Shown here piece by piece: positions 25,701 to 31,398 of a stretch of DNA of 64,000 nt. Each line of letters begins with the position of its first letter. Position 1 is the first letter of the stretch. The stretch spans positions 3,204,778 to 3,268,777 of the forward strand of contig NC_134030.1 in NCBI RefSeq assembly GCF_964204645.1, in the 5' to 3' direction. Below the pieces are notes generated by a model. The model ran no database searches, was not told where the DNA came from, and worked only from the letters and a program-made list of their open reading frames with translations. A program made the translations under genes and the position numbers. Source of the DNA: Tubulanus polymorphus (lineage: Eukaryota; Animalia; Nemertea).

Positions 25701-28700
25701 TTCTAAAATACACAACAAACATATATAAATATTTGAACTCCAGTTCTAAAATTCACAACACAGAAACATCATTATAGAATAACTGTTTCACCCCGGGACC
25801 AAGTTCCACAGTTCTGAGTTAAATATGACTTGAGAGTTCAAATACATATCGAAGATGAACTGATTTCAACTCTTGGACTCTTTAACTCATAACTGTGGAA
25901 CTGGATCTAGGAATAAGTTGCACAACGAACGATGGCTTAAGCAGAACTCACACAGAACAGGGAGACTCGGAAACAGGAGAAAGAAACACGTTTCCAAGGA
26001 TTTACCTTGGATAAACGAGAAACATGGTTTTAGGACACATGGATTCACAGATCTAACACCTTCGATTCAATGTTTCTGTTTCCCTGTGCCCTGTGTGTTG
26101 GGCTTAAGATTTATGACGTAGTCTAAGACCATCTTAGTTCTATAGTCAATCTGACAATCTAAGACGAGTCTTAGGGATTTGGGATAACTCATGAACTTAA
26201 GCCACTATTGTATAACTGAGTGATGTAATTGTCGCTTACCTCTTTGACATATCCCAAACTCTGATGCTCTTATCCTCCGAGTTACTGATGATAAGTTCTT
26301 GTCTCGGGTGAAAGATAACACTGGAAACATTGTTATAATGTCCTCTACACGTATCAACTTCCCACGCTTTAGAATCTGAAATCATCATCATCAATATAAA
26401 GAAAAGGTTATGCTTATGACGTCATCGTTTGCTGGCTATAATCTATTTGCGGTGCTGAAGACAACAAAAGATAATCAGGAAACCGTTCCACACATGAGTT
26501 AAGAGTTATCACTCATTGACAACTAATACGGCATCGTCATGCAGAAAAAGCACATGCCAGTAAACCACCTTTCAATCGGATCAGATCAACCAGACCAGAC
26601 TACCTGATCTCTATAATTGTAATTTTCACCAAAAATTATAGTAATTTGACATCTGGAATAGTAGATGAATCAACATAGAACTAGCAATTATTGCGATTTT
26701 GATATCTTTGCGAGTGGTCTTAAAGAGACTAGAAACTACTCTCTAATATAAGTCGTACTAAGAAGTCTGTCAGATCAATTTCAGTTTCTTTTCAATCAGG
26801 TTTTCTAGGAAATAAGGCCTCAGTTCTTACCGTTCATTCTCCATAGTTTAATTTGTCGATCGTCTGCACCGGAAACGATCAGCGGCAAAGTCGGATGAAA
26901 ACAGGCCCAGTTAACGCCGCGATCGTGACCTTCCAGAACATGTTTCACAATCGCGTCTGATGTACCGAACAGATCCGTCTGTCCGGGTGTTTTCAGATGT
27001 TCTTCCAACCCGCCGGGGCCGGGAGATACATTCTTCTTGCGTAGACCTATAAACACAATTTTTAATGATTAAATTCTGAAATTTGACATGGATTTGATTA
27101 TCTAAGAATATGGGAGAGGGATGGGGGATGAAAGTTTAACATCTTCACTGAATAAAGAAGGAGAATGGAGAGTTCTTAATCAGCACCGACGACAACATAG
27201 GTGAAAGTTAGTGAATGGAATGGACATCATGAAACACGTGATTATCAGTAGATGGCAGTAAGGGCGAATAATCTGAGGTGACGACCGGGTGTTGAAGCTA
27301 ATATCAGTCTATCATAAAACTGGGCCCTGGATGATATAGTACGCAATGGTTAATTACAAATACAGTAATGATACACATGCTGATTAGTCAAATACATCTG
27401 CAATGCAATACAATACATAAACATATAGCGGTAAATACATAAATACTTACACATTGATATAATTAGAAAATTAGAGCAATAGAATGAACAACATGTTGAA
27501 ACATGGCTGTGATATATGAAATGATCGGAACCAACACGAAGGATGGAAAATAGTAAATTAGTTTTCACAGCCATCGTTCCAAGAATAAATAACAAATAAG
27601 CCAAAACCGCGAGAAAAGATTAACTATCGAAATACCGAAAAAATCAAAACACCGAGTTCATTTTGCCTTCGATATTTCAACTTCATTATTAATACAACAC
27701 AAAAAACCACGCAACATGCCCCAGTATACTGTTTCTCAATATTGACGAGTTATTTTTTATTTTCAAGGAGAGGAGGAAGACCCAGGTACCATGCAGTAAA
27801 ATGGTAGTTGTTAGTCGTCATACCGGAAATATCCCAGATTCGTACGGTCTGATCTAAAGATGACGATACAAGCAGGTCTTCCGTTGGATGAAACTGGGCG
27901 CACATCACGTAATGACTATGGCCTGTCATAACACTGAAACAACAATTAGTCAAAAATACTCAATACGATAATGTTAAAAATGTTAAAAACTGTAAAACCC
28001 TGGAGAAAAAGTAGCAGCAGAATCAATAGAATCAACGTATAATTACACAAGTGATCGGGGTCGTTCTTTCATCGAACAGATTTTTGATAAAATCAATACA
28101 TGTATTTACTAATAATTACGACTAACATGTTCCACAGTGTGTGATACCGCTTAAAAGAAGGGAGAAATTGACATTAAAAATATAGATCTTTGGTACTGTG
28201 CAAATGCCCTGGAGATCGCGGTCAAAATACAGCGTCAGTTTTGAGTTTAATTGAATTTTCGAATAAAACCCAATCTTTTTCGACCGGTATGTAAATATAC
28301 GGATGAATCGTTGATTTTGATGCTTCCTATCTCCTTCTCTGTGTGACTGTTTTACAGCTGGTTAATAAAGCGATAGCTCCATTTCATTCACCTAACAACA
28401 AACAATTTCATTACGAAATATCGCGCACAATTTGATGCTTAATCCTAGTATTCGTTCCTAATGATCCAAAAAGTGCAGCCGACATTAAGATATTTCATCG
28501 GATAGGTTTACGAAATGTCGCGATGTAGATTTATGAAACGGAACTATCAAAAGAAGCCTGTAGTGCGCGGAGGACTAACAGATCGCTCTCCGTCTTTCTT
28601 ACCAGAGATATCCCAAACGCGAACCGTTTGGTCGAGTGAACACGACGCAACCAGGTCTTCAGTAGGATGAAACTGTGCGCACATAACATAGTGGCTGTGT

Positions 28701-31398: not shown

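Follow-up and report, generated by a model that had tools for sequence, protein, structure and literature searches.

A tandem pair of homologous exons encoding the same propeller segment in the single alpha-COP gene of the nemertean Tubulanus polymorphus

Tandem-exon alternatives are a well-known class of alternative splicing, and coatomer is commonly regarded as one invariant machine per animal. In humans, tandem mutually exclusive exons have been described in studies of tandem duplicated exon substitutions (PMC8373072, PMC9741552) and of the mutually exclusive exon landscape (PMC5740500). As at the locus reported here, the members of these pairs are adjacent homologues of equal length and phase, ancient and under purifying selection, and the isoforms are identical save for one homologous segment. 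COPA was not found among the genes of these works in full-text searches. In another group of systems, one exon is chosen from a tandem array, as here, by competing RNA structures (PMC6071210; ATE1, PMC7797038). More than one version of a cargo-binding propeller subunit of coatomer is known from plants, namely Arabidopsis alpha1/alpha2-COP (PMC5441910) and the beta'-COP isoforms (PMC8946003). The plant isoforms are whole-gene paralogues, whereas at the present locus one gene would swap a segment of a blade by splicing. No paper tying COPA or coatomer to mutually exclusive exons was found in full-text literature searches. The view of the preliminary description of this DNA, that no mutually exclusive exon had been described here, thus holds for the searchable literature, but a corresponding pair of isoforms of the brachiopod Lingula is annotated in RefSeq. 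That pair is known as a RefSeq annotation, and no paper describing it was found in full-text searches.

The window analysed is a stretch of 64,000 nucleotides of T. polymorphus, and all positions given for the locus refer to it. Lingula COPA (P0339) was compared with the window by tblastn, and its residues 14-1226 map in order onto 30926-16735. Summed over the matched segments the identity is 74%, the best among the 120 full-length alpha-COPs compared. By this comparison the gene is lophotrochozoan in its affinity. These full-length proteins were reached from exon-level searches through a long fragment (P0310). When the 36-residue exon peptide was used as the query against protein representatives, the list was crowded by multi-repeat WD40 proteins, with no COPA among the matches listed; no fragment bearing the A or B sequence of this organism was present among the protein matches listed. 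The collinear full-length similarity, the single locus, and the N-terminal WD40 propellers and COPI_C domain of the matching proteins identify the gene as the alpha-COP orthologue. In the 268-Mb assembly, strong matches to the exon peptide were confined to exons A and B (E values of 1e-19 and 4e-16); the next-best match (6e-4) belongs to the ordinary WD40 repeats. Since only A and B match strongly in the genome, COPA is single-copy and the exon is present in exactly two copies. The features of the locus are listed in Table 1.

Table 1. Positions of the COPA gene and of the exons and introns around the tandem pair in the 64,000-nt window.
Feature	Position	Strand	Observation
COPA gene, mapped extent	16735..30926	-	21 or more exon segments matched; the first coding exon is upstream of the mapped part
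Constitutive exon, second upstream of the pair	29409..29489	-	100% match to Lingula residues 77-103; loose end of the spliced contig of run X2 resumes exactly at 29409
Constitutive upstream exon, 77 nt	29115..29191	-	followed by donor GTATGT; spliced to exon A in the X2 contig
Intron before exon A, 402 nt	28713..29114	-	precisely excised in X2 contig record 11
Exon A, 110 nt	28603..28712	-	copy found in mRNA; spliced on both sides in X2
Intron separating A and B, 669 nt	27934..28602	-	unrelated to the other introns
Exon B, 110 nt	27824..27933	-	frame intact; in X2 only on the intron-continuous contig 27755-27999
Intron after exon B, 777 nt	27047..27823	-	part of the single stretch 27047-28602 left out in X2
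Constitutive downstream exon, 216 nt	26831..27046	-	GLRKK linker and next WD40 blade; spliced to exon A in X2

Exons A and B, 110 nt apiece on the minus strand, each have AG directly before and GT directly after them and are identical in phase. Either exon opens on the third base of a codon and closes on the first base of the following codon, with 36 full codons in between. The locus therefore has the anatomy of tandem mutually exclusive exons: neighbouring homologues that agree in length and phase and have canonical splice sites. The two copies are identical at 80 of 110 nucleotides. Twelve of the 36 codons are the same, 18 differ synonymously and 6 non-synonymously (L/M, A/T, V/L, A/V, C/S and V/I), and all six replacements are conservative. 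The 30 nucleotide differences are distributed 5/2/23 over codon positions 1/2/3. Outside the exons, similarity between the copies does not extend beyond about 8 nt, and the three introns around them (402, 669 and 777 nt) are mutually unrelated. The splice signals of the two exons are of different quality. Exon A has a weak pyrimidine tract (about 11 pyrimidines in the final 21 bases) and a strong donor, GTAAGA; exon B has a good tract (about 15 of 21) and the donor GTATGA, so that the tract is better at B and the donor better at A. The anatomy of the pair given in the preliminary description was reproduced in these analyses; the codon recount was identical to the earlier one, the introns were again unrelated, and a single COPA locus was found in the genome, in keeping with the statement there that COPA is normally single-copy. 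Among the boundaries given earlier, the upstream donor at 29115 is correct and the downstream exon begins at 27046 and not at 27047, an error of one nucleotide.

The length of the exons has a consequence for the mature message. As 110 is not divisible by three, a message that carries both exons or lacks both would meet an early stop, as the frame shift noted earlier had implied. The stops were located in both forms. In the form with both exons, a TGA lies 5 nt inside exon B; in the form lacking both, the stop is at 26913, 83 nt short of the next junction. Each of these stops has a splice junction more than 50 nt downstream of it, so that nonsense-mediated decay would be expected, from established knowledge, to remove both forms, and only the A-only and B-only mRNAs would then be productive. 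The reading frame together with mRNA surveillance can thus be sufficient on its own for exclusivity. Other mechanisms of exclusion were considered. The donors GTATGT, GTAAGA and GTATGA are all U2-like, and no incompatibility between U12 and U2 spliceosomes was seen at them. Steric exclusion does not fit, since the 669-nt intron between the copies is too long for it. With respect to docking and selector RNA pairing, the inverted repeats in these introns are all short and imperfect and do not exceed chance level. One 14-nt complementarity with one mismatch and one G-U pair was found between 29114-29127, at the end of the upstream exon and its donor, and 28691-28704, at the start of exon A. It is stronger than in 498 of 500 shuffles (2/500 reach it), and exon B is without such a pairing. 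A counterpart of this pairing is absent from Lingula, and no conserved intron sequence was found between the two loci. Unlike the docking/selector systems, the present locus has no convincing or conserved intronic complementarity.

Sequencing runs were used to examine both the assembly and the splicing of the pair. In run X1, a DNA run, the contig of record 4 (27223-28939) spans both exons. Its haplotype differs from the assembly by 25 intronic SNPs and 7 indels, and no variant lies within exon B. Intron length is polymorphic in run X1: 21 nt are inserted behind 28067, as they also are in run X3, and a CTG-rich stretch of 10 nt is inserted behind 27326. At 26958, in the downstream exon, the assembly has T and all three covering runs (X1, X2 and X3) have C, a synonymous TCA-to-TCG change in a serine codon. 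Given the shared C at this position, the runs and the assembly come from different haplotypes or individuals.

None of the sequencing runs located for the locus is on record as RNA, and run X5 (2015, presumed RNA) gave no material for it. Run X2 contains RNA. Its record 11, a contig of 601 nt, is joined exactly at GT-AG borders in 29115|28712 and 28603|27046, and the remainder of this contig resumes exactly at 29409, the next COPA exon upstream (joint 29409|29191). No processed copy of COPA able to mimic the spliced contig was found when the 268-Mb assembly was searched with the exons. These joints show that exon A is used and exon B is skipped. Exon B was recovered from run X2 only on a 245-nt contig (27755-27999) which runs on into both introns. 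The depth of this contig is 17.8 and that of neighbouring intron contigs is 5-7, values which cannot rank the parts of the gene. The pattern expected of one exon per mRNA was thus seen in its A-only form. Among the junctions proposed earlier for counting, both A joints were found, and no B joint was found in run X2, the one RNA-containing sample examined, in contig-level data from which minor variants are dropped. In this the pair differs from tandem mutually exclusive exons in general, as the RNA evidence here is for the A isoform only.

The divergence of the copies was analysed with respect to selection. At fourfold-degenerate sites 10 of the 13 shared positions differ, which amounts to saturation, and dN between A and B is 0.10. 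The synonymous distance between A and B is as large as that between phyla, or between two gastropods. In a simulation of neutral evolution, the probability that an exon keeps to at most 4 amino-acid changes and acquires no stop was 0.09 at 0.1 substitutions per site and below 0.001 at 0.2. Compared with outgroup exons, about 3 derived replacements are present in A and about 4 in B; B is not the faster copy. The saturated synonymous sites and the improbable intactness of a neutral exon require long purifying selection on both copies. On this comparison of sequences, a great age of the pair, with both copies kept by purifying selection, is supported; the fourfold saturation, the dN value and the neutral-decay simulation agree with the earlier proposal to this effect.

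The exon peptide aligns to the alpha-COP structures 4J87 and 7S22 at residues 132-167 (S. pombe, 4J87 numbering). Tyr139, Met141 and Leu157 of S. pombe alpha-COP are listed as contacts of the dibasic peptide, and binding is abolished in the Tyr139Ala mutant (PMC8825798). These residues correspond to exon positions 8, 10 and 26 and are identical in A and B. The repeat thus sits at the dilysine-binding surface, as had been described, with three contact residues falling within the exon. No difference between A and B is present at exon positions 4-19 or 25-31, stretches that contain all three contacts and both top loops. The variable positions were mapped on the Lingula propeller model, in which pLDDT is 76-86 across this blade. 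The outer strand D contains positions 2 and 3, strand B contains 21, 22 and 24, and strand C contains 32; none of the differences mapped to the top-face loops.

The pair was found in a second species. At the COPA locus of Lingula anatina (L011) the same exon is present twice in tandem, at 3038-3145 and 4156-4263, with 110 nt each, AG/GT borders and the same phase as in T. polymorphus. The intron between the Lingula copies is about 1 kb, compared with 669 nt in the window. Both isoforms are annotated in RefSeq (isoform X1, XP_013382388.1; isoform X2, XP_013382389.1), and they differ only within this exon, at 7 residues. Two of the seven are in top-face loops, one being S/G at the second residue ahead of the Tyr and the other S/T at the B-C turn, whereas none of the six replacements between A and B is located there. 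A single copy of the exon was seen in the gastropods Physella and Babylonia, the brittle star Amphiura, the annelid Dimorphilus and two arthropod-like contigs, and the cephalopod transcripts contain one exon type. No isoforms differing at this exon were found for the alpha-COP of cockroach, midge, mite, wasp, sponge and several gastropods. The search in other animals, which had been suggested in the preliminary description, thus yielded a second copy in Lingula and a single one in the sampled gastropods and annelid. A cuttlefish locus (L016) was also taken up for comparison; it covers the C-terminal part of the gene and is uninformative on the exon. The tree of ten exons is a star, in which none of the groupings A+B, L1+L2, A+L1 and B+L2 is rejected (AU p 0.16-0.54). 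In this tree the branch of exon A is 0.42 and that of exon B 0.20, and A has more codons ending in G or C. Nucleotide identity to the upstream Lingula copy is 71% for exon A and 78% for exon B, A being the more diverged copy.

We consider it probable (about 0.7) that an old tandem duplication took place in the sole alpha-COP gene and that both copies, intact and selected, serve as alternative either/or exons. Exon B would then be used in some tissue or stage, or in a minority of transcripts, as we infer. An artefact of assembly or haplotype, in which a collapsed or duplicated allele would pass for a second copy, has a negligible probability. The copies differ at 27% of nucleotides, mostly at third codon positions, with unrelated flanks; the independent DNA contig of run X1, from another haplotype, covers both copies and refutes such an artefact, in line with the earlier judgement that it was unlikely. 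A more serious alternative is that exon B is a silent relic, formerly alternative and now unspliced or spliced as noise, so that the animal makes one alpha-COP protein. The sole spliced contig found takes A and omits B, and B turns up only together with its flanking introns, as this alternative predicts. We nevertheless regard it as unlikely, because the frame of B is intact, its AG and GT are present, its pyrimidine tract is better than that of A, and its amino-acid change is no greater than in A. Neutral decay would have to be confined to less than about 0.1 substitutions per site, against a synonymous divergence that is saturated. The absence of variants from exon B in run X1, where about 1.4 would be expected from the 25 intronic SNPs and 7 indels, is weak evidence in the same direction. 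The Lingula counterpart, in addition, is annotated as expressed isoforms.

If A and B are either/or exons, what the swap changes and when the pair arose are separate matters. The exon encodes the blade which bears Tyr139, Met141 and Leu157 of the dilysine/dibasic site, and the Lingula copies do differ in their top-face loops; both points speak for the proposal made earlier that the two isoforms have different cargo-motif preferences. In T. polymorphus the sequence does not support such a difference, since the contacts and both top loops are the same in A and B and the six conservative differences lie in beta-strands. A switch of cargo motif is accordingly quite improbable here. The likeliest effect of the swap would be a subtle change of propeller stability, dynamics or rim contacts, or a separately regulated expression. 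The origin of the pair is less clear-cut. The same exon with the same borders, phase and tandem order in both species, the Ile at position 32 of the downstream copy in both, the single copy in the sampled gastropods, annelid, ophiuroid and arthropod-like contigs, and the synonymous saturation within both pairs speak for a single origin in an ancestor shared by this organism and the brachiopods, the pair either never having existed in molluscs and annelids or having been lost from them. On the other side stand the star-like exon tree, the recurrence of Val-to-Ile changes in many taxa and the lack of intron sequence conservation between the species. Since the tree is a star and rejects no grouping, common and independent origins are both compatible with the data, and we give the single origin somewhat less than an even chance. 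More doubtful still is a single duplication dating back over 500 million years that passed to both ribbon worms and brachiopods, with molluscs and annelids lacking it.

The exon pair is not a new mechanism, and its Lingula counterpart is already in RefSeq. An exon swap in the blade with three residues of the dilysine site would mean that some spiralians can make two versions of alpha-COP from one gene. A and B are a natural variant pair for probing what the framework of the blade contributes. The pair may also serve as a rare-genomic-change marker in the dispute over where nemerteans stand with respect to brachiopods. If the single duplication of more than 500 million years ago were true, it would be a rare genomic change supporting a grouping of nemerteans with lophophorates, and two versions of a cargo-binding blade would have been maintained since the Cambrian for some trafficking function.

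Further observations were made on the material compared. In Dimorphilus gyrociliatus the single exon (L012:1842-1949) is not followed by GT; the genome of this annelid is compact, and it appears to have lost the intron that lies on the downstream side of the exon in other bilaterians. The alpha-COP of Diaphorina citri (P0320), which is labelled 'LOW QUALITY PROTEIN' and has 1343 residues, scored 353 bits against a region of 112 residues, where the near-identical mite proteins scored about 300. Such a score suggests that the Diaphorina gene model contains a part of the N-terminal region in duplicate. In run X3, the contigs at 27851 and 29287 end in short loose sequences which are reverse-complementary to each other, GGTTCGTCCAT and ATGGACGAACC; these look like library adapter or linker rather than genome.
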